The translations under genes were made by a program, and so were the position numbers. This document shows, piece after piece, positions 24,621 to 54,909 of a DNA stretch of 64,000 nucleotides; positions within the stretch are counted from its first letter, which is position 1; each line of letters begins with the position of its first letter. The notes below the pieces were generated by a model. The model did no database searches, was not told the origin of the DNA, and saw only the letters and a list, made by a program, of their open reading frames with translations. Source of the stretch: Epiperipatus broadwayi (taxonomy: Eukaryota; Animalia; Onychophora). The DNA lies in contig JAQFVV010000006.1 in NCBI GenBank assembly GCA_028023455.1, forward strand, positions 310,001 through 374,000, read 5' to 3'.

Positions 24621-25046
24621 AAACCAAGAAATATCTACTCTAGTGCCATCTAGTGTAAAATTGAGTAATTGGTGATTATCAGATGCATACAAAATCTCTA
24701 TGTTTAGTATTTAAATTTACCATCATCAGTCTGATTTCTGGCTTTTCCTTTGCCACTGGGCTAGGAAATCAAAGTTGGAAGGAATGCTACTTAGAATTTT
24801 ATGAAGAATGTAATTAATCAGAAAAAACAGAAATTATGAGATATGATTCCAGTTAAGATTTTAATATAGAAAAAAATGTAGATGAAAGTTTGTAACTATC
24901 AAGATGAGATTGCATCCTGATATCTAAAAAAGGAAAATTACTCCAAAATTATAGAATATTCATTCAGCTTTATCAGCAGCATTATTCTAGTGAAAAGATG
25001 ACTGATCCAAACTGCCTGCAATGTCATCTTCGAGTCAACCCATTCA

Positions 25047-25747
25047 TGATGTGATGTGATGTGATGTGATGCACAGTGACTTCTCCATAAACGAAGTCAA
25101 AAATCTCTCAGCAATTATGCCCAGAGAAACCTGTTAGCCACTTTACCCTTCATTCCCCACTTTAAGTTTTCCCATTTTCTGCTCCATCCCATTTCCACAA
25201 CGTATGTCAACTCTATGGCTTTTATATCTAAATCCCCCTTATCTTTTCCCAAACTCGGCATAAAAACCAATAAACCACTTTCTGTATAATCACTTTTTTC
25301 ATATTTATTCTTCCGTAACTTCATTATTTGTACCCTTTCTGTTTTCAAGCTTCTACATTCAATTAACAGATGTCTAATATTTTCTATTCTTTCCTTACAC
25401 AATTTACAGACTAAATCACCCATATTTTTCCAATTACATGTATATTCTCTTGTTGCTAAAGATCCTGTTCGAGGCTTAAACAATAAACTACTTTCCTTAC
25501 TATTATCATACATTAACTTGCACTTAATGTTCTGTTTACTTCTGTATGTATTTAAACTCTTTTTACTCTCCATACTAGTTCTCCATTTCTCTGATTCCCT
25601 ATTCTTTATTAATGAATTTATTCTTTTATCCCATTCCTTACCACAACAACACTCAACAATCCTCCTAACACAATCAACCCACCTTTGTACAAATATACCG
25701 ATATAAATTCTTTATCCATGCCATTTCCACAAAATAATCTCCCATTC
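25047..25747 (-). mobile_element. LINE family B 3' fragment, copy 2, with (ATCAC)n tail
   Basis: Minus ORF YDNSKESSLLFKPRTGSLATR...VCKLCKERIENIRHLLIEC (non-LTR C-terminal CCHC knuckle); gtgat repeats at ~25047-25072 form the 3' tail. Clade not assigned. Confidence 0.8.
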
Positions 25748-27129
25748 TAGCGCCATCTGTTATAAGGTCAAGTAATTAGTAGATGGTGTAAGAATGGGGA
25801 GCTGTTCTACTTTTATCATGCTGCTGTTATTATTACCGCAAATAAAGTGAAATGAAATGTTATTGGTCAATTGAAATGTAAATCTAACAAATTACTTTAA
25901 ACCGTTATTTATTGAAAGTAAATAACTGACTGAATATTTACCATATTTGTTCAATCTTCCACTATCTATAAATAATTAATAAATTAAACTAGTTGCCAAG
26001 TTGAAGTTTGAACCATCTGTAAACTGGAAGCTTGAAGTGACTATCTTAAATAAATCTGTTGGGATGTTATTCAGTTATCCTTTCAAATAGTTAATTGGTT
26101 TTCAATACCAATCAAGAAATTATGTAGTAACTGAATAATATATTATAAGCACTTGTACTTTAATAATTACATATTAGTTGCTCTTTACTGTATCGTTTGC
26201 ATTATATATTATGTTACATTATTACATATTCTATTAAGCAGTGCCTGTCTTATTCTATATACTATAGTTATTGTAACAAAAGAATTGTAAGGTAGATTAA
26301 TACAGAGGTACATGAAAATTTACATGTGTGTACCTTACAATTACTTAACTGACTATTCAGTTAATTTTGTTTTTTGATTAGTTATTCATGAGATCCTACA
26401 ATTAGAGAACTCATGAAGGTTGACTATAAAACTTTCATTTAATTATTAATCAAACTGAATAGTTGTTTTTGTTTTTTAATTAGCTAAGGTCAATCTAGAA
26501 AACTTAATTATTGAATCCGGCATTATGCTAAACTGTATAAAACATAACAGCATCTTTTATCTGCCGAGTTTTGTAATTCACGAAGTGTATGATTAAATGA
26601 AGAGAAAAATTTTAAAAAGTATGATGTGAAACTTGTAAATTGTTATTCCAAAGATGCATTACTTAATTAATTACTGTCATAGCACTAAGAATATGAACCT
26701 ATTTTACAGAACAAATAAGTCCAAATACGTTACTAAGACAATTTACAAGCAAGAGTCTCGTAGAATCATTTAAACAAATCTGTAAATGAAACAAGCCCAT
26801 TTTTTGTTATACCAATATCAATCTATTTTGTCATTTTTTTAGTGGACAAAAGGTTAGCATTGATATAGCAAAAAATGGTCAATATTTACGGTTTATTTAA
26901 ATGATTCTATGGGAATTTTTTGGGGGGAAATTGTTTTAATAATAATTATTTCACCATTTTCTTTATAAATTTCAAATCTTGGTTTATTATTTTATGATCC
27001 ATTTTTATTTCAGTTTTCCTCCAATGTTTTGACCATATTTTTATGAACCATTTTCTATTTTAGTTTTCGTCCTACCTTTCAACCATATTATATGGTTTTT
27101 CTGAAGGTTTGTGATGATGGTGTTTTAGC

Positions 27130-27595
27130 TGTATTTTTATATTGGACTATTTCCATCATCTAATATGTGTGTTGAATGTCTTTAGAAAAGTTTAATTTTA
27201 ATTAAATATTCCAAATGTATTCAACAACTGTTAGTAATATCACAGCAAACAGGTTAGTATATGCACCAACTGTTAGTAATATCACAGCAAACAGGTTAGT
27301 ATATGTACTAACTGTTAGTAATATCACAGCAAACAGGTTAGTATATGCGCAACATTTCGAGAGGTATTTTTCTCCCCTCTTCTTCAGATGTTGCTGGCCT
27401 GACCAGTGACAGTACTAGCATGGGATTCGAACCTGGGTCCTTAGATTCTCGATTATTGAAATTTAAGGTAACGCTCTAACCAACTGAGCCATCCTGCCAA
27501 AGGCAACAGTATGTAGTAATTTCATATACTTATCTATGAGGTTCCTCCTGATTTCTCCACTTTAGATGATGGAAATAGTCCAATATAAAAATACA
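27130..27595 (-). mobile_element. Composite repeat: tRNA-like head, hammerhead-like motif, AT-rich tail, short terminal inverted duplication
   Basis: A box TGGCTCAGTTGG (27480-27491) and B box GTTCGAATCCC (27422-27432); then CTGAAGA a gagggg..cctctc GAAA (27355-27387). 27130-27163 is repeated inverted at ~27560-27595. Related copies at 39421-39680 and 55195-55300. Confidence 0.8.
27225..27350. repeat. Three tandem 42-bp units inside the composite repeat
   Basis: aactgttagtaatatcacagcaaacaggttagtatatg(c/t) repeated three times; present once in the 39.5-kb copy. Confidence 0.9.
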
Positions 27596-27612
27596 AATAT
27601 TATATGGTCATT

Positions 27613-30600
27613 CAGTGATGATATCTAACCAGTTCGTGCAAACTGGTTGTTAAAATTAATATCCAAAAATAAATTTTATTTATTATTTTCCTAAAAAAGA
27701 GTTGGCTTAACAAATTATTTAATTGTTTCCAACAATAATCTAGAACATTATTTGTATTTTTTTGTTATATCTAACATAACAATGATTCTTTTTAAACAGA
27801 TTGGGTTCAAAATGCTTTCCCCAGAATAATTTGACAGTACGATAGAAAACATATCATTTGATCGCATGCGTATTGCGCTTGGAACGTGTGATATGCACGA
27901 TGATATTTGAATGATTAAAAATTACTCTGCAAGAAATAATTCACAACAGTTTTATTTTAAGTAATTAAATCCATTATTTATCATGTTTCAAATTAGTTTA
28001 TTTAAAAGTATACAAATAAAAAGTGTTATTTTATTAGTGATAAAGGAATCCATATTTAATTTTTACACAACAAGATAAGTAAGAAATTAATTAACTATTA
28101 GTTTACTTACATTTAACAGAGGCATTATTAAAATTAAAAATTAGAAATAAATTTGGCACAAATGTATTTATGTATTACCATAATTTTTTTAAAGAAATTT
28201 ACTCTTGCTGAAATTATTTTACTTTAAAGATAAAATAACTTCATTCAAAAGGACCTATCATTGTGAAAATAAACTGCAACATAAAATCGCTGTGATTTTG
28301 TTTTACCGATGTTTTAAATATTTATTTAACTTTTATTTTTTATTTAAATATTTTATTTCTTCACTTACATATTTATCATACAAGAGTTGTTTTTATTTGA
28401 TTAGTAAATTTAATGGATTACCAGCTGTAGTAAGTTTATAGTACATTATTTTCATTTAGTTTGCTATATCTAATGTAACAGTGTGCCTTTTACTAACGAT
28501 GAGTTCAACATATTTTTTCTAAAATAACTTGAGAAGATGATAAATACAACAATAACTTTGGCTCATCAAATAACATGACTTGTTTTCAAATATTTTTTTT
28601 TTTTTCTTTTTTTAATTTTACTATTTTATTTCAGTTTTATGATTTGTTACCACTCATTTTTATTAAAAGTTAATTAATTAGATGTTTTTTCCTAGGGCGA
28701 ATTTAACATGAGAATATAATAAAAATAAACCCTTCACAAGAAGTGAAACGAAAATGCCAAATAATATCAGATTTCTTCATAACAGACCCAAAAACTGATA
28801 CAGAATCGAAAACGATAGTAAAGGATGATATTTTATCTGTTTCTTCTGATACAACAAAAAATAAAGTTGACGACACAAAAACGCTGTCCAGTTCCAAAAG
28901 TACAAAAGATGCACATAAAATTAATATAGATATTGACCTTCCAGACTGCTGGAATATGAAACAAGCCAGTGAATTCAAAGAAAAATATTGCGGTTTATTT
29001 ATTATTGGAAAATAACTTGGGTGTTATATCTGTACCAAAATTGAGTCAATAAAAGTGAAGGTGCTCATGTGTCAAAAGAATGGAGAAGATGTAATATTGT
29101 TCCAAGTGGAAAAAATAAAATGGTTCAACAAACTTCTCTTCAAAAAAAAAAAGATAAAAAAACAATTTTCAGCAAAAACACACCAGATATGTGCGATGCA
29201 ATTAAAAGTACAAAAAATGCAATTTTCAAATCCGTAGACAAAGCTCATGAAAAGTTTATGAGCTCCACTTGTAAAATTTTCAATATGGTTTACACTTTAG
29301 CAAAATGAAACCGACCATTTTCTGATATTGAACATTTAATTCAGAGTTACAAAAAAAAGAATGGGTTAGATATAGGAGTGGGACTCCATTCTTGATTCAC
29401 GGCTGTCAAAATTGTTGAGCACATTGCAAAATACATTAAAAAGGAAGTGTTTCAAAAATAATAGATCAGAATTTAAAGATATGTGTTATAATTGATGAGG
29501 CATTAACAATATCGTGCAAACCAGTCCTTATCTTTTTTTTTTATTAAGGCTGAAGATACAGATTTTTCACCAACAAGTTTTGTAGATTTAGTGGAATTAC
29601 AAAACCAAGATGCTGAAACCATTTACACTGTTCTACTACAAAGTTTGCATTCAGTAGGATTTGATAATCCATATTTGAAGAATAATTTGATTGGATTTTA
29701 TTCAGATGGAGCAAGTGTGATGCTGGGAAGGCAGTCAGGAGTGAATGTTAAAATAAAAAACCACTATCCCGAGATTATTATTTGGCATTGTTTGAGTCAT
29801 TGCCTTCTGCTTGTGTTGGATGATTCTCAAGGACATAAAGCAAGTGAATCACTTTAAAGCATTTATTGATGAAATATACAAAATCTTTTATCAGTCTAAT
29901 AAAAACCAAATGGCACTGAATAAAATTTCAAACCATTTGGGAATTGAAATTCTAAAAATTGGTAAAGTTTTTGGCCCAAGATGGGCAGCATGCACTCATA
30001 GAACAGCAGTTGCGACATGGCAAGCCTATCCAGCATTCTATGATTTTTTTTCTACTAAAAGAAATTTTCTGGAATGGCTAAACATCTTGCCAACAAATAT
30101 TTTATGAGAGATCTGGCTTTAACATTTGATATACTAGAGGAAATTTCTTTGCTGTCAGCTGCTCTTCAAGGAAGATGTGTAAATATATTGCATGCTAAAC
30201 AATTGATTAAGAGAACAATTAAAGCATTTGAATATCTCAAAGAGAAGGGTTGGTACTTACAAAAAATAATAAATGAAACTATCTCTTCTAAGGAATTCCA
30301 ATATATTAATTTTGTTGAAGACAACAAATATGTGAGTCTTCCCCATCAAAAATTACTGAATGTCAGTGACAACAAATATGACATTAAGATTAATAGATTG
30401 TGATAGCATAAGTAATAATATTCAAGATAGAAATCATAAAATTCATCAATTAGTTCAAATTGTGAACCTGGATGCTTGTAATCTGGAAGAAGCTGTAGTT
30501 CCCTGGAAAGAATTTGAAGAGAAATTACCAGATTTTTACAAAGTATTTCATCATGAGATTTCAGTTAATGATTTCTGTGATTATGTTGAAAATGTTATGA

Positions 30601-31127
30601 GAAATCACCAGAAATATGTTGTACTCAAAGTTCCGCAGAGTCTGAACAAGGGTTTTCTGTGATGAACACAATTTATTCCGATAAAAGAAATAGCCTTGAA
30701 ATGAAAAATGTGGCAAATTTTCTAGTAATAAATTTGATAGGGCTTCCATTAGATCGTTGGGACTGCAGTGACTCAGTTCAAATATGGCTAAGAAATCACA
30801 ACACAGCTGATGATGCTAGAGTCAAAAAGCATCATCAACCTGAAGAGACATGATGCGAATAGAATGTCATTATGGAAATATCTTGCCAAATAAATAAGTT
30901 TTTTCCCAATTACAAAAATGGTTTAATTCTTTTTGATTCCATAAGTGAGATTGTAAAGTACATCATAGTGTGTATGTACACTGCTGCATTTTTTCGTGTA
31001 TGAGGGGAGGGGGTGGCATGCAAAATTTCTGAAAAGCCGCCAAAAATTTTTAGGTATGAAACCAAAAAGTGATTTGCTTCCATGCTTAGAAAGAACCGGT
31101 TCTTGGAAATTTGGGATATCATCACTG
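27613..31127 (+). mobile_element. Full-length decayed hAT transposon (KIAA1586/ZNF862-like transposase)
   Basis: Perfect 13-bp TIRs cagtgatgatatc / gatatcatcactg and identical 8-bp TSD tggtcatt (27605-27612, 31128-31135). Fragmented ORFs 28743-30853 include IDE...LIF (29490), DAETI..., FYSDGASVMLGRQSGV, WHCLSHCLLL, IGKVFGPRWAA. Confidence 0.93.
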
Positions 31128-31330
31128 TGGTCATTGTTGAGGATTATTCCTATAAAATTTATATACACACATATATGTTTACAAAGAATTTCCAAAACAA
31201 CATGATAAAAAAATTTTCTATCACATAAATTACAATTTTTTTAAACTTCTTGCTTATTTTCGTATGTCTACATCCCTTTACATGAAAATTTTTTTTTAAA
31301 ATTTACATTTACTCTTCAATTATTATATTT

Positions 31331-32310
31331 CATCATCTTTTTCAAATATTATCAATCCATTGCAGAATCAAGGTTTCTCCAAGTCCAGTTTCTCCAATCC
31401 CTAACCTTTCTTCTCCACATTACCCCAACACTTCCTTATTCTATTCATCCATTTCACATGTTGTTTCTTTCTAGATCTTGTACAATCTCGTGGAATCCAT
31501 TTTAAGACTTCAACTGTCCATTTACTATTATATGACCGGAAGAACTGAATAATTCTTTCAATGATGTCAGTAACACATGTTTGTTTTCTTACCCATGTGT
31601 TTACTCCTAACATAATCTCTCCATACTTCATTGAGTGGTCTGAAATCTCTATTGGTTCTGCTAAGTGCCCAAGTGTCAGATCCGTAAGTAAGAATTTGTA
31701 ATATACATTTATTAAAAATCTTTTTAAAGATATAGGCATGTTGTCTTTTAATACAAAGTTATTTCTATTAAAAGCACTCCAATTAAGTTTAATTCTATGA
31801 TTTTCTTCCATTATATTTCCATTTGCAGTAATAATCTGACTCGCGTATTTATAGTTGTTACCTTCTTCTAACTCATCATTATCAATCTTTATTATTATTA
31901 CAGAATTACAAGCGTATTGAGGCGCTGGAGAGAGAAGCTATAATAAATACTTATATGAATCGATAAAATACTTGACAGCTGAGCACTTTCGAGGCATTTA
32001 GCCTCATCAGTTAAACATTACATTAGTCTTTTCAGCATTTATCTTTAGTCTTACTTTCTTACTTTCATCTGAGAACTCTTGCAACATTTCCTTAAACTGT
32101 GAAGCATTATTTGCAAAAACAATTACCTCTGCAAAATCTAGATGAATTAAATAATCTCCATTTACTTTTACTTCCTTAGCTTCCCATTTCTTCAGTCATT
32201 GAACTTTTTGATCACAAGTTATAGATCCAGGATATTGTCATATCCTGAAGAATATTTATGAGAGTAAATGTCCAAAACTTTTTACAGCAATTTTTCAAGA
32301 AGTAGTTTGT
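31331..32310 (-). mobile_element. Older RTE LINE copy with 5' inversion and an internal hammerhead-bearing insertion
   Basis: 31331-32189 aligns to the 44.2-45.0 kb RTE on minus; 32190-32310 aligns on plus to the immediately upstream part (SSVIKALDHQGIDPGYCHILKNIY...SPKLFTA..QEV.C); non-RTE insert at ~31895-32020. Confidence 0.82.
31974..32012 (-). ncRNA. Hammerhead-ribozyme-like motif
   Basis: Reverse complement: CTGATGA ggc taaat gcc tc GAAA gtgc TC agctg. Core present; stem I partner not evident. Confidence 0.5.
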
Positions 32311-32436
32311 TAATCATTATAATTACACTTCTATAATTATACGATTTGTAATACTTTCTATTTAAAACTAGTTTTTTCAACTAATTTATTCAAAACTGGG
32401 TTTTCAACCGGTTTTTTTTTTTTTTCATATGTCAAA

Positions 32437-32508
32437 TGCATTGACTGGGAAGCGAACTCGGGCCAGCTACTTGGAAGGCAGCTATGCTAACCACTAGGCC
32501 ATCAACGC
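32437..32508 (-). pseudogene. Retroposed tRNA-Gly(TCC) pseudogene
   Basis: GCGTTGATGGCCTAGTGGTTAGCATAGCTGCCTTCCAAGTAGCTGGCCCGAGTTCGCTTCCCAGTCAATGCA. Acceptor and anticodon stems pair, anticodon TCC; D and T stems are broken and A58 is changed to C. An A-run and direct repeats flank it. Confidence 0.85.
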
Positions 32509-33449
32509 TTGACTTTTCAACCAGGTTTTAGTAGAAAAATATTAGGAATCTGGCATAATTATAGACATTAATTATAATGAAGTGTACCTTGTATAAAAAT
32601 TTAAATTAAAAAAAAATATTTTTAAATGTAAAAGAATGTAGACACATAAAAAGTAAGCAGGATGTAAGTTTAAAAAAATGTATTTGCCATGTTCAGCCAC
32701 CACAAATTCTGCATTTGTAGTAAAGATAGGCAGTCAAGCAGAAATTATTATAACTCGAGAAAACTTTATAACTAAAATTTGACATTCATTGCCAATAAGA
32801 TAGTAATGGAAAAGGCTAAATTAACCGAAATTAATATATACAACTTAATAATTAGGTTACATAGATTAATATTATTATAATATGATGCTTGGCCATAGAG
32901 GCATACAAAAACATAATAAAGCCGGTGTGGTCTGCAAAAAGTCCCTACGTCCACTTTTGAACCTTTTCTGGTGGAATTTACTAGCTCTTTCATAGTCCTT
33001 TGAACACTCAGCATTGTAGTTCCTTCAGATCAACCCAACCAGCTCCATTGATATAAGTGTATGAGTGAAGACCTCGATTCTTCTTACAGATGAGCTTTTA
33101 TCTTTTTTTCAGTCCTATCTGAGACAGCAACATTATAACAATGGAAAGTTCTAGAACAGTAATTACTAGCATTGTTTAGTGTCATTTTGGTTAATCTGCA
33201 TCCTGATTTATTCTTTTAGTTAAATATTTTTTAATACAGGAACGCTTATCAACATATTTTAATTTTAATATTTATGACTTTTTAATTTTTACTTCATAAT
33301 ACTTCAATATTTATTTCAACTTTACCACAATTATTTATTATTTTCCAAATACATTATTTTATTTACATTCAAAATATAGGAGTTTTTTAGATGATAAAAT
33401 ATTTTTTATTATGTTATTTTGGAAATTCTTTGTGAACATATATTTGTAT

Positions 33450-33598
33450 ATATTATATACAGAGCTCGCAAATAAGCTTTTAACAAGCTTTGCAGAATAT
33501 CCCCAACCCCAGACTGGTTTATTTGCGAGCTCTATATATAACATTTGTAATACAAGCTTATTAAATTAGGTCATGTGACATCTGACTTGATTTTTTTG
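33450..33598 (-). repeat. Family E truncated copy with short fold-back
   Basis: agagctcgcaaataa...ttatttgcgagctct hairpin around ccccaaccccagactggttt; 33540-33598 is the reverse complement of 13275-13335. Confidence 0.75.
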
Positions 33599-33839
33599 TA
33601 ATTTGTATATATATATTATAGGAATAATCCTTGACAATGACTATATAATATGGTTGAAATGTTGGAGAAAAACTGAATTAAAAAATGGTTCATAAAATAA
33701 CAAACCAAGTTTTGAAAAGAAAACGTATGTTAACTGATTTTTTAAAAATATATTGTCTTAGCAATGTATTTGAATTGTTCTGTGAAATAGGTTTATGTTT
33801 ATTATACATGCAGAAGATGTTGCCAATATAACAAAAGTG

Positions 33840-34260
33840 TAAAAGAAGGTATAATAATGAAGGCTATTTACTATTACTAGATACAGGGAAAGAATCCAAA
33901 AATGAAGTAAAGATTGGGATTATAGATATTCGTGTGGAGATGGGAAAATATTGAACACTTATTTTTGGAGTTTAGGATTTTGAAAGATGATCAGGATAAA
34001 TTGTATTGGAGTATGGGAGAACTTTAACGATAAAGGAAATGGAAGAAGTCGAGATTTTATGACTTTTTGTTTAGGTCTTTATAATGAATTTGGAAAATAG
34101 GACAGGATAATGGAATTAAAGTAAAACTTTTTTAAAATTGGGATAGGAGGAAAAATTGAAATGAACCAGTGATGGAAATATTTGGATAATAAGGAATTTA
34201 AAGATTTTGAAAAAGGAATATTTAATTTGGATAATAGAATTTCTGGATTTACAACCTATG
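33840..34260 (+). mobile_element. Highly decayed LINE 3' remnant
   Basis: Purine-rich; ggaaaatattgaacacttatttttggag reads ENIEHLFLE, as in the C-terminal knuckle of family B. Weak support. Confidence 0.35.
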
Positions 34261-34428
34261 TACAGTACCTTCCAATTTTATTTGAGGTGAGGACAGTTTT
34301 CACCATACTCTTGTCAAACTTAATTTTGAAATATTTATAAAATTTATTATATTAAAGTATATTACAAAATATTTAGTTTATTCTATAAATTATTATATAA
34401 CTATTCAGCATTATATGTTTGTTAATAG

Positions 34429-34566
34429 GTAATACATTATGAAGAAGAAGAAGTTGATCAACGTAACCCAGAACATGATGTACAGCTTTATAAAGAAACT
34501 TGTCATGATATTTCAAAAATCATGAAAGAAATATTTTTCCTGAAACATTCAGACAGGAAAGATGTT
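34429..34566 (+). CDS. THOC5: THO complex subunit 5, coding exon 2
   Basis: aatag|GTA...GTT|gtgagt, 138 nt: VIHYEEEEVDQRNPEHDVQLYKETCHDISKIMKEIFFLKHSDRKDV; compare human [45 protein letters not shown]. Confidence 0.93.
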
Positions 34567-35326
34567 GTGAGTAAAAAATTGTGATTTATGTTTATGTTAT
34601 GAGGGAAAAAATATGGTTTTAAGTTTTTTTAATAAAATGTTAAATGGTATTAATAACATAATTAATTTTCGATAATTAAGATAAAAAACTTTCTGTAAAA
34701 ATAGTTTCAAAGAGCGTAGTAATAGCATACTCAAGGTTACTATAACTGTCTCTAAAATAGGGAGCTATTTTTATTTTAATTGAAATGGCAGCTCATTATC
34801 AGATATATAGTCGTAGATTTAATTTCTGATGAAGGTACTGGTTTTAATTTTTATTTTTACATAGCACATGTTCTTAGAAGCAGTGATTCATTAAATTTCT
34901 TGTACTTCAGAACGATCTCTACCTACATTCCCAAACTAGTTTTTGCTATGGTCTTCGTTAATGAGGAACTCTTGACGTTTCCTCTGAATCCAGCAGCGAT
35001 CTTTAACATTTTTATACTGTCAAGTTAAAGAAATTAGCTTAAAATTAAAAGAAAAATCATAGCTATAAGATCAGTTACTAAATATTTTTAGAGATCTCAG
35101 TTTTATGCTAGCTATAGGCACTCTTTAGCTTGGATAGGATATATAACAAAATTTCTCGTGATTTTCTCTGCATACATTCAACATATGCTTTTAAGAACCA
35201 TAATTCACTCTTATTACTAGGATCTAGACAAAACTTTTACTCCTTTGCATCTTTCTCAATACTTTATTTATGTCTAATTATTTTGGCTGTCTAATAGTCA
35301 ATCTTTATATAAAGATATTAATAGTT

Positions 35327-35360
35327 CTGAAGAAGACTGCTAGTTAGTCGAAATTATAAT
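35327..35360 (+). ncRNA. Hammerhead-like motif (CUGAAGA type), stem III decayed
   Basis: CTGAAGA a gactgctagttagtc GAAA ttata. Confidence 0.45.
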
Positions 35361-41830: not shown

Positions 41831-42585
41831 AAAAGAGATTTATGGAGTAGAGATTAGCATGTTCAGTTGCCATGCCATGATCTAGCATACAATTCTAGCC
41901 CAGGTGAATCTTTAAAAAATGTTCAGATCACAAACAAGTTGAAGATTTTTTTTATTTATTCAAGCAGTCATTTCAAAATCATTTACTATTGATCAGTAAA
42001 TGGATATCTTATTTTTATTGTTTAGGTGTAAAGCTAGAGCAACTCTCACACCAATTTAATTTAGCATAATCTTGAATAATCTGTGATCACCAGATGCATA
42101 TAAAATCCTTATCATTAATATTTAAATTCCCAACCTCAGACTGGTTTTTGGATTTTATCATTGAGGTTTAAAATTCAAAGTCAGAAAGAATGCAAACATG
42201 TATTCAACAACAAACCTTCAAATTCATTTTGACTGGCAAAATCATATTTTTAATGATATGCTCACTATGAAATCAAAAAAAGTAATATAATATGGCCTTC
42301 ACCATTATTGTGTTATTATACTCCTACACCCACTTACAAACATAATTTTTAAAATTATTAAAATGGCCCATTAAAATCCCATCAGTAAATTTATAAAATA
42401 ATAATATTAAATGTACTTTTTTTTTAAATCATTAAAAGTTTTTTTTTTTAATTTTCGAAAAAAATAAACTTTTAAAAATGTTTTTCTGATCACCTAAAAC
42501 TTGTTCTTTTTTTACATTATCCTTTAAGAGTATTTTAATCTGAAGGTTTTTTTAAATACAATATAAATCTATTATTATAAACCAC

Positions 42586-43203: not shown

Positions 43204-43389
43204 TACAATATGTATATCATAAAAGATATTCATTTTATATTTTAAAAAAAATATTTCAGAAAAAAAGTAGTATTAACATATTTTCCAATATAATGAAACC
43301 TCGATCCATAATTTCTCAGGAGAATGGCAAACCAAAGTAATATATATATGGTAAACAACTACTAAACATCACGTGATCCCTTTTCTTTA

Positions 43390-43780
43390 TGTTTACACAG
43401 ATGATTATGGTGATTGTGGTTATTAACGAACCAAAGACATCAAAAAATATGGATGCTGAATTGAGTTCAGATCTGTATGACTATACAAGCTAATGAGCTT
43501 GTATTGAAAACATTATTGTGTTTTCATTTTGGACTCAAAGCTTTCTAGTTAGCTAATAAGGTAAAAGGTAGCTGCTGGAGGATTGCATTAGATCCTAAAA
43601 TCTAGGTGCTGTACTCTGAGATCCAAAGCTCCTCACTGATGCAAACTACAAGTTAGAAACTAGTCTGGGGATATTGGATGAGTATGTGCTAGATAGGGAT
43701 TTTATGCATAAACCTTCTTGCATCCACTGATTACTCTGGCTTGCATTGAATTGCATTACTGTATGGTGAGTTTTGCCTCT
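43390..43780 (+). repeat. Family A long copy (internal region plus hammerhead repeat)
   Basis: Reverse complement of ~60900-61310; cctca CTGATGC aaactacaagtta GAAA ctag TC tgggg at 43631-43670 (A9 mutated to C). Confidence 0.8.
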
Positions 43781-44193
43781 GTGTATATAGTAAACAAATA
43801 AATCTTATAGCTAAGAAACAGTGTAGAGATTATCATTCATAAGAATGTGTGGATTTAATAGATTGCAGTTTATTAAAAATATTATTTACTAAAAAAATTT
43901 TAAATTGTCATTTGTTTTAGACAAACTTTATGCCTCATTTTAAGTTATAGAACACGGTTTCTGTACACATAAAACAATGCTTTTAATTTCATCAGTATCA
44001 GTATTATCAAAGTTTGGCACAGCTTTTGACATACAAGTTTTGTTTTTTCCAAAAGTAATGAAATAAATGCAGGAACTAAGCTATAATTCAGATAATGGAC
44101 ATCGTATGAAGCACTTAAGAATGCACAGAGTCATTTCTAATAAACTAAAAGTTTCAAAATATCATTCTACTAATTGTCCTTGATGAAGCATTT

Positions 44194-45432
44194 CATCATC
44201 ATCATCATCATCAACCATTATCAATCCACTGCAGGATGAAGGTCTCTCCAAGTTTAATCCATATTCTCCGATCTTTAGCTTCTCTTCTCCACAACACCCC
44301 TGCACATTTTCTTATTTCATCCATCCATCTCACATGTGGCCTCTTTCTGGGTCTTTTACAATCTCTTGGAATCCAGTTTAAAATTTCAATTGTCCATCTA
44401 TTATCATCTCTTCTAGCAATATGTCCAGCCCAACTCCATTTCAATCTTTTAATTTTTTCAATAAGGTCAGTAACACCTGTTTGTTGTCTTACCCATACAT
44501 TGCGTTTTCGATCTCCTCTTGTTACTCCCAACATACATCTCTCCATACTCCTTTGAGTGGTCTGAAGTCTCTGTATTGCTCTTCTATTAAGTGTCCAAGT
44601 CTCAGATCCATAAGTAAGAACTGGTAAAACACATTTGTTAAAAACCATCCTTTTCAAACACATAGGCATATTTCCTTTTAGTATCAAGTTATTTCTACCA
44701 AAAGCACTCCAACCAAGTTTAATTCTATGATTAATTTCCTCCATTTTGTTTCCATCTGTATTAATAATCTGACCAAGGTATTTGTAACTGTGAACTTCTT
44801 CTAATTCTTCATAATCAATCTTTATTTTCATATTTTGAGCAAATCGATTAAACATTACTTTAGTCTTTTTAACATTTATCTTTAGTCCTACTTTTCTACT
44901 TTCATCTGCTAACTCCTGCAACATTTCCTGTAGCTCTGAAGCATTATTTGCAAAAACAACTACATCATCTGCGAAATCTAAATGACTTAAATACTCTCCA
45001 TTTACTTTCACTCCTTTAGTTTCCCATTTTAATCCACAAAATACTTCTTGCAGCACTGCTGTAAAGAGTTTTGGAGATATGGAGTCACCTTGTCTTACAC
45101 CTTTCTCAATGTTGATTTTTCCAGTATCATTATGTAATCTAATTGTTGCTGTTGCATTTTTATAAATATTCTTTAAAATATGACAATATCCTGGATCTAT
45201 ACCTTGATGATCCAATGCTTTAATCACTGAAGAAATGTGTATAGAATCGAATGCCTTTTCATAATCTACAAATCCAAAACATAATGACAACTCATATTCG
45301 TTTGTCCTTTCTACAACTTCTCTCAATACCTGGATATGATCTATTGTACTAAAACCACTTTTAAATCCAGCTTGTTCTCTTGGTTGGTGGAAATCCAAAG
45401 TTCTCTGTAGACTTTGGATTTCCACCAACCAA
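44194..45432 (-). mobile_element. Young 5'-truncated RTE LINE with uninterrupted RT domain
   Basis: Stop-free frame with QPREQAGFKSGFST, FVDYEKAFDSI, GVRQGDSISPKLF and LDFADDVVVF; (GAT)n tail at 44194-44213; 9-bp TSD gaagcattt at 44185-44193 and 45433-45441. No endonuclease domain. Confidence 0.95.
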
Positions 45433-45599
45433 GAAGCATTTACTCTCACTTAATGTGTTATGAAATCTCCACTTGATCCAATGAATATTGTATATCATTT
45501 CAAATTTATGAAGTTTTATAACTTTATTTTTCTTATTGCATTGCCAAATCCATATAATATTAATATCATTTTAATTCTTTATTATTTTTACAACCCACT

Positions 45600-45638
45600 A
45601 TTGACGGTTTCGATTGGCCCAGAAATCTTCTTCAGAAC
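45600..45638 (-). ncRNA. Hammerhead-like motif (CUGAAGA type)
   Basis: Reverse complement: gtt CTGAAGA a gatt tctgggcc aatc GAAA ccg TC aat; 3-bp stem I. Confidence 0.55.
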
Positions 45639-46241
45639 TGTAACAAACCCAATACAAATATATATGATATTAATATTATATACTTTCAAATTTAAAAAAA
45701 AAAAAGAATTATAGGGGAAATTTTTATTTGGGCTATGATTTTACAGTGATGAACACATTAAAATGACAATTTAGGAATCGATGGAATGAAGAGAAAATAA
45801 TTTGTATTGGGATAGTTTGAAACCAAAAAGAACAAATATAAAAATTTGTAGAAAAATGAAAGTGATGGAAATGATGCGATGAAATTTTGCTATATATAAA
45901 AACAGAAAAGCACTTTTACTAGACCATTATCTCTAATTAAATGTTATTAACATTCCTGTGAGAATTTTTTTGCCTGTTTATCATATATTCAGTTATGGTA
46001 TTTTTCTGGAGTGAATTAATTGGATATGTAATTGATTTCTGGATAATTAGCCATTTTCCTATTAGGAAGTATATAATTAGGTGAGAGTGGAATAGAATTT
46101 TACATTGTCCAATATTAATATCTTTTATATTAACGTTGAATTTTGTTAGACCAAATATATATTGTATGCCCGCTGAGAATAATAATTATGATTATTTGGT
46201 TATAAATGAATTCTATTAATATGACTTGCTCTCCTAATTAG

Positions 46242-46355
46242 ACTCAAGAAATTCAAGAGAAAAGAATTCAAGCATCATTACTTTTTATTAACTTGAAAAA
46301 GCTTAATCGGTTAGCCCATATTAGGAACAAAAAAGCTCGTGATGTAACCAATGAG
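46242..46355 (+). CDS. THOC5: THO complex subunit 5, coding exon 3
   Basis: ttag|ACT...GAG|gtatgt, 114 nt: [38 protein letters not shown], containing the conserved LKKLNRLAH motif. Confidence 0.96.
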
Positions 46356-46587
46356 GTATGTATAGATGTATTTTAATTTTATTTTACTACGATTTATTAT
46401 TTGTTTAAATTAATTTTATTTCATTTGCGAATAACTTTTAAATAAATTTAATATATTTTTTATTAAGATTCATATATTGTACAGGAATCTACGATTTACA
46501 AAATTTCTTCCACTCTTATTGTGTTAATTTTAATAAAAAAAAACCACACTTCTTTTAATACATCTTTCACAATGCTTTATTTAATTT

Positions 46588-46625
46588 ATGACGGTTTCGA
46601 CTGACTAACTGTCTTTCTTCAGATC
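46588..46625 (-). ncRNA. Hammerhead-like motif (CUGAAGA type)
   Basis: Reverse complement: at CTGAAGA aa gac agttagtca gtc GAAA ccg TC at, followed by aattaaataaagcattgtgaaa, similar to the tail at 35370-35390. Confidence 0.5.
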
Positions 46626-48159
46626 TAAGTTATTTTTTACAAAAAATATGTATGTTAATTGGAGTTATTCTTTCTTTATGTAAAAGATACTTATCATATG
46701 ATTGTTTTTGTTTTAGATATGAAGATGTTAGGTAGTCAAAACTGTCATAAATTATATAAAATATTTCTGGAACGAACGGAGAAATGGATTTTCTTGTAAA
46801 GATTCATAAAGAATTATGATTTAAAAAACTCAATAAAAAACATTGAAATTTTTATTCAATCTTTATTTAATTGAATAGATGTCTTTATTTTATGAATTTA
46901 TATCAAATCGAGGGGGGGGGGTGATTATAATAGTGTCTTTATATCCACTTTCATTTGGTTTCTAGCCATTATGTAGATGAAATTGTGTCTAATAATGAAT
47001 CCTATACAAGATTTTAAGGGAATTAAGTTTTTAAATATACACATTTAACCTTCACCAAAAATATTTAATGACATAATAGAAAAATGCAAATATGAAAAAG
47101 TTGTAAAGTAATAAATCTAAAGAGAAAGTGAGGGAGTAACCACGTAGACAATTGAGGGTGCAAAATGAGGGAATATCTAACTGAAAAATGATTCAAGATA
47201 TCACTCATAAGATGAATTTATGAATTTAAATTTTATAAATTTCTCATTTTTTTATTTGGTACACAAAGCCTTACATGACTCTCCCAGATTACATTTAACA
47301 GCAGCAATCATTCTTTCACTCTGTTTTAAAGACATATGTAAATATGAATAAATAACGAATAATAGACAATAGCACCAATTAATTTTTCCAGACGGGATTG
47401 CATATATCTGTCTAACAGCTCTCTTTACTTTTATAATACTCAAGTGAATGACTCGGTATATTTCAACATTCTGATCCCAAGTCAATTTGTTTTGTTAAGT
47501 TAAATAACTGACAGTTGATCAGCAACTACATATTTTAACGATGATTTTATGATGATTGGCTTGTTTCTTGGCTATTGAAACTGGCATGTTATTAGCTTAA
47601 AATTGTATAAAAAAAAATAAAGATTACGGATGAATTTGTATAATTCGATAGTATTAAAAAAAATAAAGATAGCTACTGGGTGGATTTATGTATTCTAATG
47701 TTCCTTTCTATATGGAGATCAAATTAGATTGAGATTGGATTGCCACTACTATTTGACGTCTTTCGGTTGCTTGTGCTTATCATAGATAGCAAGAATACAA
47801 CAATAAAAATAATGAAGATTGTAAATACTTAGAATTTCACTTTGATTTTTTGTTTAATTAAGGTCTGATGTTCAGTCAGTTATAATTGCCATTTTTCAGT
47901 TGTTAAGATTTTTCTTAAAAAAAGTTCTGCCAAAAATTATATAATCGTTTTTAATAACAACACTATTTAATTCTTCTGTTTATGCAATATGTGATTAAAT
48001 AACAGCAGCTCTTTCTCTCTATATTGCCATCTAATATAATCTTGATTAATCAATGATTATCAGATGTCTCATTTCATAACTACCTTACTTACAGCTTTGA
48101 ATCTTAAGATAAAAGCACAAGCCTGAGAGAGATCTGAGGATGGGGATTTAAATGCAATG

Positions 48160-48207
48160 AGGCGCCTAATAATCATTAATTTCTCAAGTGTTTAATAGAT
48201 GGCGCTA
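48160..48207 (-). repeat. Stand-alone copy of the GCGCCATCT stem-loop module
   Basis: Reverse complement tagcgccatctattaaacacttgagaaattaatgattattaggcgcct resembles 24641-24688 along its length. Confidence 0.6.
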
Positions 48208-48343
48208 TCATAATCAGCTCTTTTTGTCTTATCATCGTTTTTGTTTTAGTAATATGATTAATAACATAATAGTCTTAACATTATTTTAGAAAAAGTCTCA
48301 CAAATACAGTTTTTATAAAAAGAAAGTTTTTGATAATATAGGG

Positions 48344-48657
48344 CAGGGGTCCCCAACCCTATTCCCGCGGGCACCATGGCGCCTGCAGACCATTTTACGT
48401 GTGCCCGCCGCTAACCGAATACGATAAAAAATTATTTATCATACAAATAAATTTAATTTTAAAATTTCTTATAAATTATTGTATTATATTGTAATCAAAT
48501 GTTAAAATTTTATTTTTGAAATAAATATTTTTTTGTACATTATGTGTATTATTAACAATATTCAACTATAAATTTACATTGAAAAAATAAATGGTGCCCG
48601 CCACCTGGTTGGTATTATAGAATGTGCTCTTAAGTGCAAAAAGGTTGGGGACCACTG
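48344..48657. mobile_element. hAT MITE
   Basis: TIRs caggggtccccaacc / ggttggggaccactg; identical 8-bp TSD atataggg (48336-48343, 48658-48665). Confidence 0.92.
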
Positions 48658-49617
48658 ATATAGGGTTTTATTTTTCAGATTTATAATGATCAAAAATCTC
48701 CAAGAGTAACAAGAAAAGTCCTTTCAATGAAATTTTCATATTTAATTTATTATTTTATTTAAAAAAAAAAAATTGGTTCTACAAATCAAAAAATAAATAT
48801 CATACAATATTCACGATATTAAAGTTGTACTATGTTAAATACAACTGATTTTTATTTCATCCTTGAAATTAAGCATTATTAAATTCATTTATTATTTGGG
48901 TGGGTGACCTAGAAATCTTGAGTGTTGATTAACAAACATCTAATGACTTCCTGGGTCACTAAGTTATTCAACTATTAATTGGATAAAAAAATGGCTGGTC
49001 ACATCAGAAGCAGATCACCGTGTAATATTTGCAATCATGTTTTGTAAAATTAACATTGAGTAAAATATAATGTATAATGTAAAGATGTTAAAGATTGATT
49101 TAGTTATATTTGAATGTTTAAAAAATGAGATAGATCAACTGAATTTCATAGTTGGACAGGAATAGAAATGTATATATGCTAATGATTTTATTATGTTGAA
49201 TGTTAGTGAATATATGAAGGTATAAGTTTTAAGAACAAGATCACGGTAGATGGCTTGCTGTTTCTAAAAACCTTTTGTTGAATGGACTTCATTGGTATAT
49301 ATGAAAATAGTTTGTTGGCTGATATAACAGTTTTTTTTCTTTCAAATTTTAAATAATAATTTTAAAAAATTAACCTTAGCAAAAGCAAACTATTTAACCA
49401 AGAATTAATGTGTCAGTTCTTAGTTTAACGTTCACATTCATTTTTATGTTTAACTATTTCATAAGATCATCAATGTAAATCAATTTTTATCTTTTATACC
49501 TTCGATATTGTTTTGTGTTACAGTAAATAATATGATTTGAAAATTGGCTAAATATAATATAATTTGGTTGTATAAATATGAGTCATAATTTTTTTTCCTT
49601 TTTTTTTTTTTATCTAG

Positions 49618-49715
49618 GCAAAGCAGAGAGTTGATAATTTTCAGTTACAATTACAAAATTTACTGTACGAAATGATGCATTTACAAAAGGAAGTAACTAA
49701 GTGCTTAGAATTTAA
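49618..49715 (+). CDS. THOC5: THO complex subunit 5, coding exon 4
   Basis: polypyrimidine-ctag|GCA...AA|gtaag, 98 nt: [32 protein letters not shown](K), containing the conserved [18 protein letters not shown] motif. Confidence 0.97.
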
Positions 49716-50219
49716 GTAAGAAAATATATCATGGTTTTTTTTTTCTTTTTATCTTGTATAAACAAAACTAGCGAAATATTTGTTGGAATTTAATTTTCTA
49801 TCTTTACGTAATTGTCCAACAAATTCATCTTTTTAATATCTCCGTATTTAATTTTAAGAAAAAAAAAATTTCTTACTATTTTTATTATTATTTATGAAAT
49901 AAAAAAGAATGGAGAAATATAGAAGGTGTCTATCTATAAAAAAGATATTATGCATGGGAGAAAGAGAAATGTAAATAGCCATGTGTGTGCTGAAAATCAG
50001 ATATATTAATCTTTAACTTGGATTAAAGTTTATATCTGTGTTAGAGAAAATTTCTAATTTAATAAATGATTAATAATAATCATTAAGTGTTTATCAAAAA
50101 GTTGATAACGTAAATGTTGGGAGAGGAGTAAATTGATGCTTGAAAATAAAAATGAGACAATTTGCTCTACATAAGTACTCTTCATGTAATAAAGATATAT
50201 ATGAGAGATGATGACTTTG

Positions 50220-50262
50220 CCCAACTGATGAGTGCTGGTTCAGCATGAAATGCATTTTGAGG
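50220..50262 (+). ncRNA. Minimal type I hammerhead ribozyme candidate, best-preserved core
   Basis: cccaa CTGATGA gtgctg gtt cagcat GAAA tgca TT ttgagg: 6-bp stem II, palindromic ATGCAT stem III, AUU cleavage triplet, partial stem I. Confidence 0.65.
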
Positions 50263-53200
50263 GTTATTTGTCTTTTATTGTATTTTTATTTATATGAAAT
50301 AAAAAAGAATGGAGAAATATAGAAGTTGTCTATTTTTACTATTTTCCTAAGAACCTGTTTTTAATGTTATAAATATTTTTTTTAGAAGTTGCATTTAAGA
50401 CAAGTATTCATACTAAAGTAAGTCTTATGATTGGCCTGTCATTTATTCAAAAATGCAAGTGATGATTAACCTTTTATTCCAGCTTTATAAATAAATAAAT
50501 AATCAAATGCCTTTATTGCCCGGAAGTTCGTAAGTTTGAGTGTTCAAAGTGTCAGAAATGAAATTGATATGAAGATATCTAACTCTATCACTGCACATGC
50601 AGGGCATTCCAATTTTATCGTGATTGAAGCAGTCGGAAAGATTTGACAATGTGTTTGTGCGATAATGTTTTCCGTTTTTTTTTTATTAGAGAATAGTTTT
50701 TGTATGCCATTTGGTGCTGAAAACTAAAGTTATTTTGATTTTGATATTTTATAGGAAAAAAAAAAAAAAATCAAAGAAAATTAGAATAAAATTGCTAATA
50801 ATTAACATAATAATTTTTCATCATCGCATTTATTTACCACAATTGAAAATAACAAATAAAAATTTTATTACGACTATTTGTGTGTTTCAATTTTTTCTCG
50901 TCCAATTTTTATTTTCGTAAATTGAGAGCATTCATTTTTTTTTTATTATTATAAATGTTAATTTAATTTACACGTACATATGTCGTTCAATGTATCCTTT
51001 TCATTTTTGTTTGAATAAATTGTCCAAAATGTTTCTAACATTAGCGAAAGAAAAGGTTTATTATATTTATTTATTTTTTAAGTGCAATTGAGCAGGTTTT
51101 TGAATTGGAAAACCAGATTCATAGCACTCATGGATTGGCTAGGTATGCTGGGTATTTATTGACGAGTTACTAGTTATTTAAATTAGATATTTAAATATTC
51201 CACCTGCTTGAAAGTTGGATACTATCAAATTAAGATTTTAACAGATTTTTCATACAGTTTGGTTGATCAGTTTGCTTTCTAGTTTTTAAATCTTAAACAA
51301 TCCTCCCTCTTATTGTAAAAGATTGTAGCTTTTTACATATTTTTTCTACAGATTTTTAAAGAAGCATATCTATTGTATAAAAATAAAATTACTTATATAT
51401 GTACATTTTTAGAAATTACAATCAATGCTGTCCATTGTGGTTTAATGCAGTGGTAGACTGGTAGATTCAATAGTTTAAAGTCGCAGCCCAAACTTTATGA
51501 CTTCCAGTGATTGAACTTTTTTTGTTAACTCCCAAACATTAAATGATTTATTTATTTTTTTGCCCTGCATTGTTTTATTAATTTAATACAATAGTGTAAT
51601 GGTAGACATTGGAATGGACCAATCAGGGCTCTACTTCTTATGAATTTTCGAGCAATAAACATTCAGTGGATTGTTTGTGTTGTGCGTGGTTTAGCAGGTT
51701 CATGGGCTACCGCTCTCACTCTGTTACTTCTAGCATTCACGCTTCTTATGAACTATTGATTAATAACTTTACATTGTTTCAAAATATTCCTAACTACAAG
51801 ATCTTAACATTGACTCATTGTATTTTGAAAGATTTCGCGAACGTTAGTGTTTAATAGAAATTTTGGACTTAATTAGTGAAGGGTTTAACAGCTTCACACT
51901 CTCAAATCAAAATGCCTTAGATTCGTCTATATAATTAGAAAGTAGCCTTAGATTTGTCTATATAATTAGAAAGTAGGTTGAAGATAAGAGTGGCCACTCT
52001 TATCTTTATAAAGTCATAATCTTGTGTGAAGATTTGTAGAGATCCCTCTAGTGGCAAATTGAACACTCAAGCACATAGTATTAAGGTTATAGCCTTAAAT
52101 ATATATATAAATCATTTTATATTTTTTAATACTCATTCTTATATCTTAAACATGTGATTGCAGACACGGATTACATTTGAAAGTTATCAACCATTTATTA
52201 TTCATGTTTGATAATTATGCAAGGAGAGAATTTGAAGTCATAAAATTTATTTTCTAGAAAATTACTTACATCAATGCTATATGAGTATTTTTGCATTATC
52301 AGTTTCTTTATTTTTATGTGATTTTATGTATCTTACTCTTATGTGTCTGTCCAAGAAATGATCTATTTTTAAATTTACAATCTAATTAACATTTGGCATA
52401 TGAAGAATTCCTGACGACAGTACATTTTTTTAAAAGTTTGCAAAAATTTTAGCAAAACAGTATCGAAAAAGTGTAAAGTTTTTAATTTTATGTCGGATGC
52501 AGTACACTTTATGTACAAATAAAGAGTTTTGCTAAAAAGTATTCGAAGTGGTTTGGATAAATTGTATATACTACGGTATTGACATCTAGTGTTTTTAAAT
52601 TGTTTTTAAACTTTCTTATAAACTAAAAAATAGAAAATAAAAAATTAAAGAAATATTTTATTCGCATAAATGCATTAAAAAGTAAAAAAATAAATTTTCT
52701 TCAGCTCTCATCATATTCTTGATATTATCTTTCAAAACAACCTTTATTCGTACCTCAGAGACAAGCGCCAAGAGGTATAAGTTTACAAATACAAAGTGGT
52801 AATCGTGTTATTTGTTGATACAAATCTTGTGATTCCCACTGTGCGGTGACCACCTTTGTCCACCCGCCCATCAGAACCTTCAAGGATACGATTCGTTACA
52901 TATTATATTCAAACGTACAAATTTAAACTGTTGATTGGTGTATAATTATTCCTATGAGTCAAGATGTGCAGTGACTATTTTGTTTGCCTGCCCGTCTCGA
53001 CCATCACAAATATAATTCAATATATATTAATCAATCAACACACTTAGATTATCCAATTTAAAATTTCCATTTCAAATGGTTACTCAATCAAAGTTACATG
53101 AAGATTTTGTTTCTGGTCAATTGCAGTCTACTAGGAGCAGACCATGTTATGTTTTATTTACTCCTGGTTTTAGTTCTGGAGTTCAATATGGAACCCCCTA

Positions 53201-53389
53201 AAGGGGAGTTATGACCATCTCTTGATTCAGGTATTCCTTGCCTTTCCTCAATCTGATCCAACTTGTTTTGTTCTTTAATTTCTTTGTTTTTTGTCTAGTC
53301 GGTTTTTACCTTATAATTCAGTGGGCATTTTTCAACTGTTCTGAATCATCCTGACATTTTCGCTGGTTCATATTGCTTTTAAGGTGAGC

Positions 53390-53850
53390 TTAAATAGTCC
53401 ATGCCTTTTTCAAATATTTTGTTTTGCGCCGACCAGATGGCGAAATTGACATGTGTTGCCAGTCTGATCGAGCCAAACGATCCTTTTTTGATTGCCTTTA
53501 CCATATCGACACTAGCCCCATCTTTGTCTCTGATCTTTTGCAGGGTGAGAGATCGTAATTTATTCCAAATTTCGCAGTCCTGAAAAATGTGTGCAATTGT
53601 CTCTTCTGTTTTTTTCCACAGCGGACAAATTGGATCAATTCTATATCTTCACTTGTGGTGAAGGAATGCTGAGGTGGGTAGGGCCCCCAGGTTAATTTTA
53701 ATTACGAAGTCTACTAGCTTAACTTCTAGTTTCCAATACTTTGTCAACCCCTCAAGCCGCGTAATTCCAAGCTGGAATCTTGTCTTGACATTGGAACTGT
53801 GTCATTAGTTAGACCATAAATGTCCCAATATATTCTTGATATTGTAAGAT
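53390..53850 (-). mobile_element. Non-LTR retrotransposon C-terminal (zf-RVT, L1/Tx1-like) fragment
   Basis: Minus strand reads KINLGALPTSAFLHHK*RYRIDPICPLWKKTEETIAHIFQDCEIW, matching the LPT..L....CPxC...ET..H.F..C motif. Confidence 0.7.
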
Positions 53851-54371
53851 TAAAATAAAAGGGTACAGTGCTTGCGTTTAGAAATATTTGCAGACTATTT
53901 CTAAACATAAGTGTCACATTCTTTTATTTTGTTTGCATAATATCATTAATACTGTGAAAAGTGAAGAAAAGTATTTTTTACTTAATAGTGCCCTAAAAGT
54001 GTCTCTTTGTATATATATATATATATATTAGTAGTAGTATTAATTTTCTTTGTCATATTAATAACATTTCTCCAGATTGATTTATTGGCTCAAGTCTTTT
54101 ATTGTGATGATGGTCTGAGTCTCTTTTACCATCTAATTTTCTAATGAATTAGATTATCTTATAATGTAACTATGGTTTCACAATTCAGTTTTGTCATTTG
54201 ATTTTGAAATGAAATTTAAGTATGATTTGATATCCACAGGTTTGTTTGTTTTTCATGTAATGTTATTCCCAACAGTTTTCCAGTTCATATGCAACATTAC
54301 TTTTTTCTTGAATATTCATCTACAGTTAGTAAATTTTGATCTTTATTTTTAAAGATATTTTTTACATCTAT

Positions 54372-54909
54372 GACATGTGATGTGATGTATTTAGCTTCTC
54401 CTTAAACGAAGTCAAGAATATCTCAGCAACTATGCCCAGATAAACCTGTTAGCCACTTTATTTTCCATTCCCCACTCTAAGTCTTCCGATATTCTGCCCC
54501 ATCCCATTTCCACAACATAATCTTTGTCAATTCTATGGCCTTTAAATCTAAATCCCCCTTATCTTTTCGCAAACCCAGCATAAAAACTACTAACTCACTT
54601 TCTGTATTGTCACTTTGTTGATACCTATTCTCCCATAACTTCATTATCTGTACCCTTTCTGCTTTCAAGCATTTACATTCAATCAACAGATGCCTAATAT
54701 TTTCTATACCTTCCTACACAATTTGCAGGCTAAATCACCCATAGCTCTCCACCATAGTGACATCTAGCATGATTTTAAGTAATTATTGGTTACTCAAGCT
54801 AATGCTAGATGGCGCTGCTGTGGAATGCTAACAAGTTTTTCTTGGTATATTTGCTGAGAAATTCTTGACTTCATTTAAGGAGTAGCTTCAGTACATCACA
54901 TCACATGTC
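54372..54909. mobile_element. LINE family B copy 3 (minus), stem-loop module, and inverted short family B 3' end (plus)
   Basis: 54372-54745 aligns to 25060-25430; module at 54755-54817; 54827-54909 is the reverse complement of 54372-54454 including the catcacatcac tail. Confidence 0.8.

Follow-up and report, generated by a model that had tools for sequence, protein, structure and literature searches.

We analysed a 64,000-nt stretch of the genome of the onychophoran Epiperipatus broadwayi (contig JAQFVV010000006.1 of assembly GCA_028023455.1, positions 310,001 to 374,000; hereafter the window) and found that a family of long interspersed elements (LINEs), which we call LINE B or family B, abuts with its truncated 5' ends on the 3' ends of two related repeats, M and M2. 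The host assembly comprises 5.6 Gb at ~28% GC, and the window is rich in retroelements. All four LINE B 5' ends in the window adjoin an M end directly and in the same orientation, and the pairing of LINE B with M and M2 is non-random and general in this genome. Alongside this association and its fixed orientation we observe an unconserved 3' flank, repeat pieces that appear older than the LINE pieces attached to them, and at least one array that was built sequentially. Judging from these sequences, we lean towards homing of LINE B to the 3' ends of resident M and M2 copies, in preference to template switching, as the source of the composites.

LINE B and its 5' junctions

Family B is a true non-LTR (long terminal repeat) retrotransposon, since a longer genomic copy encodes a reverse transcriptase (RT) domain (Pfam RVT_1, E=8.8e-27), copy 2 of the window encodes a zf-RVT-like C-terminal part (25115-25573, minus strand; Pfam), and the copies carry (ATCAC)n tails. 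The closest RT relatives are tick elements (labelled 'transposons') at 32-35% identity; these relatives are LINE-type RTs, and an APE domain (PF14529) is present in some of them. All LINE B copies share the same 3' end, closed by a short (ATCAC)n tail, and differ in their 5' truncation. When mapped on a natural reference copy of 2.2 kb, the truncation points range from 82 to more than 2200 nt upstream of the 3' end.

Self-BLAST comparison of the window and mapping on the reference copy placed three copies on the minus strand, and, as a first-pass annotation of the window had noted, they stop at different points. Copy 1 (24110-24620) is cut ~565 nt from the 3' end, copy 2 (25045-25718, or 25059-25718 by self-BLAST, with its (ATCAC)n tail at 25045-25070) at ~668 nt, and copy 3 (54374-54751) at ~381 nt. 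Copy 1 has a degenerate tail and is old, lying ~14% from the LINE B majority, and copy 3 shares 95-98% identity with numerous members of its subfamily in the genome. The idea that copy 3 is a member of a fixed-length 380-bp family was rejected, as the alignments end at the LINE limit of the query and the anchor has only 111 matches. No haplotig or empty allele of copy 3 was found among the matches to copy 3.

The same annotation had placed a GCCATCT...AGATGG motif in the same orientation next to each of the three copies, and this was borne out. Beside copy 1 lies the 3' end of an M copy on the minus strand (24595-24789; 61.8 bits with an nhmmer model of M), which probably extends to ~24905 and whose terminal part is the stretch originally singled out, 24641-24688. 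The 5' end of copy 2 adjoins a mini inverted dimer of the M 3' end (25719-25835, containing 25748-25790), and a second such mini-dimer (54746-54826, containing 54755-54817) has a LINE B piece on either side. One of these is copy 3. The other, a fourth case that had been missed, lies on the far side of the motif and consists of the 3'-terminal ~85 nt of LINE B with its tail, in inverted orientation (54827-54912, plus strand; self-BLAST) and with its 5' end toward the mini-dimer. It belongs to another subfamily than copy 3. We considered whether the two LINE arms around this mini-dimer differ in age and dropped the idea, since both are young within their different subfamilies, where each matches its relatives at 96-98% identity. 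A second head-to-head structure resembling window positions 54374-54912 was seen elsewhere in the genome (L065:4949-5600, contig G000:C12395), where an inverted LINE B piece of 490 nt is followed by a degenerate M-like core of ~60 nt, then by a LINE B 3' piece of 105 nt and lastly by a LINE B copy of ~3 kb.

Longer genomic copies of LINE B run through all three window stop points without the motif, and at least 40 other genomic copies extend beyond the stop point of the window copy at 25059-25718. It follows that the window copies are genuine 5' truncations and that the motif lies outside the LINE body, in agreement with the first-pass annotation. This bears directly on the proposal that the motif belongs to the LINE, as a 5' untranslated or internal part, or that M is a short interspersed element (SINE) with a LINE B-derived tail, which we regard as refuted. 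The adjacency itself and a short resemblance of the LINE 3' region to the repeat end near two junctions could be cited for it, but long copies continue through every truncation point without the motif, and only two of 28 randomly drawn M ends (L038 and L060) have LINE B attached, the other 26 being without it. The SINE version fares no better: the downstream flanks of M fail to match a LINE B 3' model, and local alignment of LINE B with the M/M2 3' ends scores no better than shuffles.

Beyond the window, we used an independent sample of ~240 kb from elsewhere in the genome, with loci chosen for LINE B alone and the window excluded. It holds 32 internal LINE B 5' junctions. At seven of these a truncated LINE B begins immediately after the tail of another LINE B copy, in head-to-tail arrays, and such tail-to-LINE junctions probably need an ordinary tail-homology route. 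The other 25 junctions were scored against the repeats. Strong matches to a hidden Markov model (HMM) of M/M2 ends, ending at the junction and in the correct orientation, were found at four to five of the 25, compared with 1.4% of random 103-nt windows of the same loci and one of 37 LINE B 3' flanks. With a matrix of the terminal 36 nt the junctions scored above random (Mann-Whitney p=1.1e-5), ten of the 25 exceeding the random 90th percentile, and the LINE B 3' flanks showed no enrichment. The enrichment of the motif at family B 5' ends that the first-pass annotation had implied is thus present among the sampled junctions. On the repeat side, the junction coincides with the M/M2 terminus or falls within the last ~25 nt of the repeat, and is never found far beyond it; on the LINE side there are many truncation points, and in all cases the LINE has the orientation of the repeat. 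One more genomic stretch (G000:C96:2528243-2528527) matches the M2-to-LINE junction of locus L010 over its whole 283 nt at 86%, and is either an old copy of that composite or an independent event within a few bases.

The partner repeats M and M2

Alignment of 30 genomic places identified the GCCATCT...AGATGG motif as the 3'-terminal ~50-70 nt of a longer high-copy repeat, M, with copies of ~250-450 bp. A strict pattern for the right half of the motif has 2069 matches in the genome and its reversed control has 1. Conservation runs ~25-30 nt past the motif's CTAG and then ends. The gaps of 0-25 nt originally described between LINE and motif are therefore M's own last ~25-30 nt, and LINE B and M adjoin directly.

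The motif had also been described as a stem-loop module of ~50 nt, which does not hold: it is the 3' end of a longer repeat, and only two of the four cited stretches fold significantly compared with shuffles (54752-54820, z -4.1; 25745-25792, z -2.7). Both of these are mini-dimers of the M end. Ordinary single M ends show no significant folding against shuffles (z -0.3 and +0.4, with 24636-24692 at +0.4), and the longer-repeat alignment together with the fold tests rules out a free-standing 50-nt hairpin. The stretch at 48160-48207, reported as a free copy of the module, indeed has no LINE beside it, but it does not stand alone, being the right end of a ~250-bp inverted dimer of M (48004-48254) whose left end is another motif copy (48020-48070).

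M2 is a relative of M with four copies in the window, and a model made from these copies alone finds colinear matches in 11 of the 30 M loci. Two of the four are inverted dimers (18192-18475, by self-BLAST, and 60891-61485), one is a single arm on the minus strand (7636-7835), and one, on the plus strand, has a decayed ribozyme core (43403-43790; self-BLAST and profile match). Both M and M2 occur mostly as head-to-head inverted pairs of their 3' parts, with the 3' ends outward. In M2 a site ~125 nt before the 3' end combines CTGAYGA with a short helix, GAAAC and a palindrome-containing TAGTC. This arrangement faces outward in each arm, at 61014-61043 (minus) and 61330-61359 (plus) in the dimer at 60891-61485 and at 7794-7823 (minus) in the single arm. 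The pattern CTGAYGA-N8-18-GAAACTAGTC has three matches in the window where 0 are expected, all of them in M2. Rfam models do not call the motif, and the strict hammerhead core is kept in none of 30 M copies; for these reasons we term it hammerhead-like only.

M and M2 are most likely Penelope-style non-coding retro-repeats that are older than the LINE B copies adjoining them. Their ends are inverted and a TA often follows the terminus, but TA is common at 28% GC; M as a TA-flanked Tc1/mariner-type miniature inverted-repeat transposable element (MITE) became the less likely reading once the oriented hammerhead-like motif was found together with the Penelope-style dimers. Long direct repeats flank two M copies, one of 19 nt in locus L056 (contig G000:C43; p=0.001) and one of ~13 nt with one indel around the window dimer (47990-48003 and 48255-48266). 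Such repeats would be expected from retroposition, unlike cut-and-paste movement. Across M copies, target-site duplications are no stronger than a permutation null. Rfam scores the fold-backs at 60971-61402 and 48010-48215 as plant microRNA precursors (MIR7533, E=2.6e-15, far below gathering), and we rejected them as microRNA genes, as they are structural look-alikes that fall below the Rfam gathering threshold.

Resident target, co-copied template or broken end

In the reading that we prefer, LINE B would be a LINE of the ordinary endonuclease type, tailed by (ATCAC)n, that integrates preferentially at the exact 3' boundary of a resident M or M2 copy, in the same orientation. Its tail would then contact the former flank of the repeat, and its 5' end, cut variably in each event, would be joined to the repeat terminus with a loss of 0-25 nt of that terminus. 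An inverted dimer exposes two outward 3' ends, so both of its sides would be open to LINE B. Head-to-tail arrays would arise where LINE B inserts at the tail of an older copy of its own family. The LINE B machinery presumably recognises the terminal sequence or structure of the repeat, on the upstream side of the nick. Of the earlier suggestion that the LINE targets a small MITE-like palindrome, the targeting is kept as the favoured explanation, and what changes is the target, which would be the 3' terminus of an older resident hammerhead-type retro-repeat and not a 50-nt MITE.

The 3' flanks of 29 long LINE B copies are all different. They match neither one another nor M, and target sequence is absent on the 3' side; under homing such a one-sided target is expected, since the site is the very end of the target. 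Beyond the tail of copy 3, 16-33 nt (54342-54374 in the window) are common to a subset of its subfamily at 95-97%, and this may reflect 3' transduction out of a source element.

Homing and template switching alike predict that the partner end is constant, the truncation variable and the 3' flanks unrelated. In template switching, the RT would reach the 5' end of a broken LINE B RNA and jump to the 3' end of an M/M2 (or LINE B) RNA, so that a single insertion would bring in the repeat joined to the LINE piece, as happens in the U6/L1 and MINE chimeras. The geometry is like that of these known chimeras in its constant partner 3' end, variable truncation and same orientation (PMC4476161, PMC2104539). 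A single rule would also cover both the M-to-LINE and the LINE-tail-to-LINE junctions, and the explanation fits the unrelated 3' flanks and a repeat-side junction that is never found far past the terminus. We nevertheless consider this explanation doubtful, on account of the relative ages of the joined pieces.

For each composite we set the best genomic match of the repeat piece against the age of the LINE joined to it; if the repeat piece had been co-copied from RNA, a donor about as close as twice the age of the LINE permits would be expected. The LINE pieces in this test lie 1.4-4.2% from the LINE majority and are up to 97-99% identical to other copies. Among the best 40 candidates, the best other match of the repeat piece at window positions 54745-54825 is 92% over 38 nt and that of the L012 piece is 91% over 44 nt, and the pieces of L063, L013 and L015 find 89%, 87% and 89%, respectively. 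The sole case of the six with near-identical relatives is L010 (95-97%), so that for five of six attached repeat pieces no near-identical donor was found within the best 40 candidates. Relative to LINE age, the shortfall appears clear for the two youngest cases. A jump of the RT between templates, which the first-pass annotation had put forward as its second option, therefore retains its chimera-like geometry but is less well supported by the donor test, five of the six pieces being without a donor, among the best 40 candidates, at the identity expected from LINE age. Many attached pieces are moreover decayed, an unlikely source of RNAs ending at the old terminus, and no duplication was seen to flank the composites above a permutation null (LINE B alone shows none either).

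The arrays point the same way in one instance. In locus L003 the tail of a LINE B copy of 0.9% divergence coincides precisely with the 5' boundary of a copy 14% from the majority, and the best genomic match of this older downstream copy, among the best 40 candidates, is 86%. The array was built stepwise, with the older unit resident and the younger inserted at its upstream boundary, and the old unit is again donor-less, which speaks against template switching. It also fits repeated use of the upstream sequence, though the locus ends before the upstream would become visible. It is the donor-less repeat pieces, the different subfamilies of the two LINE arms around the mini-dimer at 54746-54826 and this stepwise array that lead us to favour homing. 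Another locus (L021:139-3667, contig G000:C12596) has four head-to-tail LINE B copies at 11, 4, 11.5 and 14% from the majority, and was assembled in several steps.

The repeat could also be resident without LINE B aiming at it. The palindromic 3' end of M/M2 might be fragile or nicked, by a cruciform, a replication stall or a Penelope-type endonuclease that builds tandem and inverted arrays, and LINE B would prime at the break, with the flank-side end priming its complementary DNA. A repeat-side junction at the terminus or at most ~25 nt inside does resemble a resected end, and duplications are absent; the complex tandem and inverted structures and end extensions of Penelope-type elements have been ascribed to their endonuclease (PMC8557442), and M/M2 have terminal palindromes, with strong folding seen in the mini-dimers. 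However, ordinary single M ends lack significant structure, even decayed ends serve as partners, and a share of at least one third of LINE B junctions is more than an accidental route would readily give. Priming from the flank-side end alone would be left unexplained as well, and we judge this account unlikely.

We rejected RNA ligation at a ribozyme-cut end (2',3'-cyclic phosphate), as the junction lies ~125 nt downstream of the putative hammerhead cleavage site. A wider proposal is that the link is functional: LINE B would recognise the 3' ends of Penelope-type hammerhead repeats, as a DNA target and possibly as an RNA template, and would so both nest at these repeats and help to spread them, with the repeat-plus-LINE-tail composites as a source of new SINE-like families; we consider it rather unlikely.

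Several points weigh against homing. No target-site duplication around LINE B or around LINE plus repeat rises above permutation nulls, whether it would include the motif or exclude it, as the first-pass annotation had envisaged, and the classic proof of what moved together is therefore missing. No conserved sequence lies 3' of the LINE B tail, apart from a weak excess of TAGAT (8 of 45, background 6%); such a flank gives no sign of the classic site-specific endonuclease target that spans the nick. The LINE B copies examined do not reach 5' into the endonuclease region. By objective measures only ~35-55% of the junctions are M-like, the count by eye of ~70% being subjective, and the junction sample is small. 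M/M2 ends and LINE B tails are, furthermore, two unrelated upstream partners, which would call either for two routes or for a shared feature, and no such feature was found. Finally, the donor search passes over very common words and scores no more than 40 top candidates.

Should homing prove true, the 3' terminus of a retroelement would join the short list of LINE target classes, and these loci would show how clusters of unrelated repeats and head-to-head structures grow in a very large invertebrate genome. Should template switching prove true, a LINE enzyme would be implicated in spreading hammerhead repeats, and the mobiliser of such repeats in animals is a matter of debate. For annotation, the composites are easily taken for a single element, a MITE or a LINE-tailed SINE.

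The window also contains a second LINE family (family A; RVT_1, E=4e-29) in three copies, at 44180-45449 (minus), 31330-32189 and 63083-63420, and M-like ends were found at none of their three 5' junctions. A transfer RNA-like sequence at 32437-32508 (minus; Rfam, 31.8 bits), ~250 nt from a truncated end of this second family, is perhaps a SINE head. The pol region of a Gypsy-type LTR retrotransposon, with RT, RNase H and integrase core in three broken open reading frames, lies at 21115-23840 (plus) and is the sole GC-richer part of the window.

Comparison with known systems

The first-pass annotation had taken the pairing to be unlike described elements, which was too strong a statement, as Tx1 homing, U6/L1 chimeras and MINE have all been described (PMC4494074, PMC4476161, PMC2104539). 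LINEs of the Tx1 clade home into transposons, Tx1 into Tx1D in Xenopus and Tx1-Mar into Mariner-N4_AMi in crocodilians, and some crocodilian families of the clade target LTR elements (PMC4494074). As in those systems, independent and variably 5'-truncated LINEs are found here at one place of an abundant non-autonomous element, and repeated insertions yield nested or tandem clusters. Unlike Tx1-clade insertions, which lie inside the target and have it on both sides, LINE B lies at the 3' terminus of its target, with target sequence on the 5' side only and an arbitrary 3' flank, and in place of a DNA transposon the partner is a retro-repeat that bears a hammerhead-like motif. We liken LINE B to Tx1 by its insertion pattern; its clade is not established, and its RT relatives are the tick elements.

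U6/L1 chimeric pseudogenes and MINE of Magnaporthe arise by template switching (PMC4476161, PMC2104539), and the RNA ligation in U6/L1 is performed by RtcB (PMC6789731). They share with the composites described here the 3' end of a small non-coding partner fused, in the same orientation, to a variably truncated LINE. In those chimeras, however, the partner is freshly copied from an expressed gene and one duplication surrounds the whole, whereas most M/M2 partners tested are donor-less among the best 40 candidates and a duplication was not found.

Penelope-like elements can have an inverted 5'-truncated copy beside the unit and ribozyme motifs in their terminal repeats (PMC8557442). M and M2 resemble these elements, their non-autonomous hammerhead repeats and the non-LTR retrozymes of animals in their head-to-head copies, outward 3' ends and very high copy number, and M2 adds a minimal, hammerhead-like CUGANGA...GAAA and a palindromic helix-III stretch (PMC8557442, PMC7229834, bioRxiv 10.64898/2026.07.22.740005). 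Unlike Penelope hammerhead repeats, the M2 motif is missed by Rfam and its core is lost in M. The literature searched on Penelope and hammerhead repeats makes no mention of an association with a LINE.

LINEs that target microsatellites or tails include Kibi and Koshi (PMC4494074). The LINE B arrays in which a new copy begins immediately behind the (ATCAC)n tail of its neighbour are of this type, but the landing at M/M2 ends is not: these ends have no similarity to the LINE B 3' end, so tail homology cannot explain it. The mechanism is most likely the known homing of LINEs with a new kind of target, the 3' end of another retroelement family.

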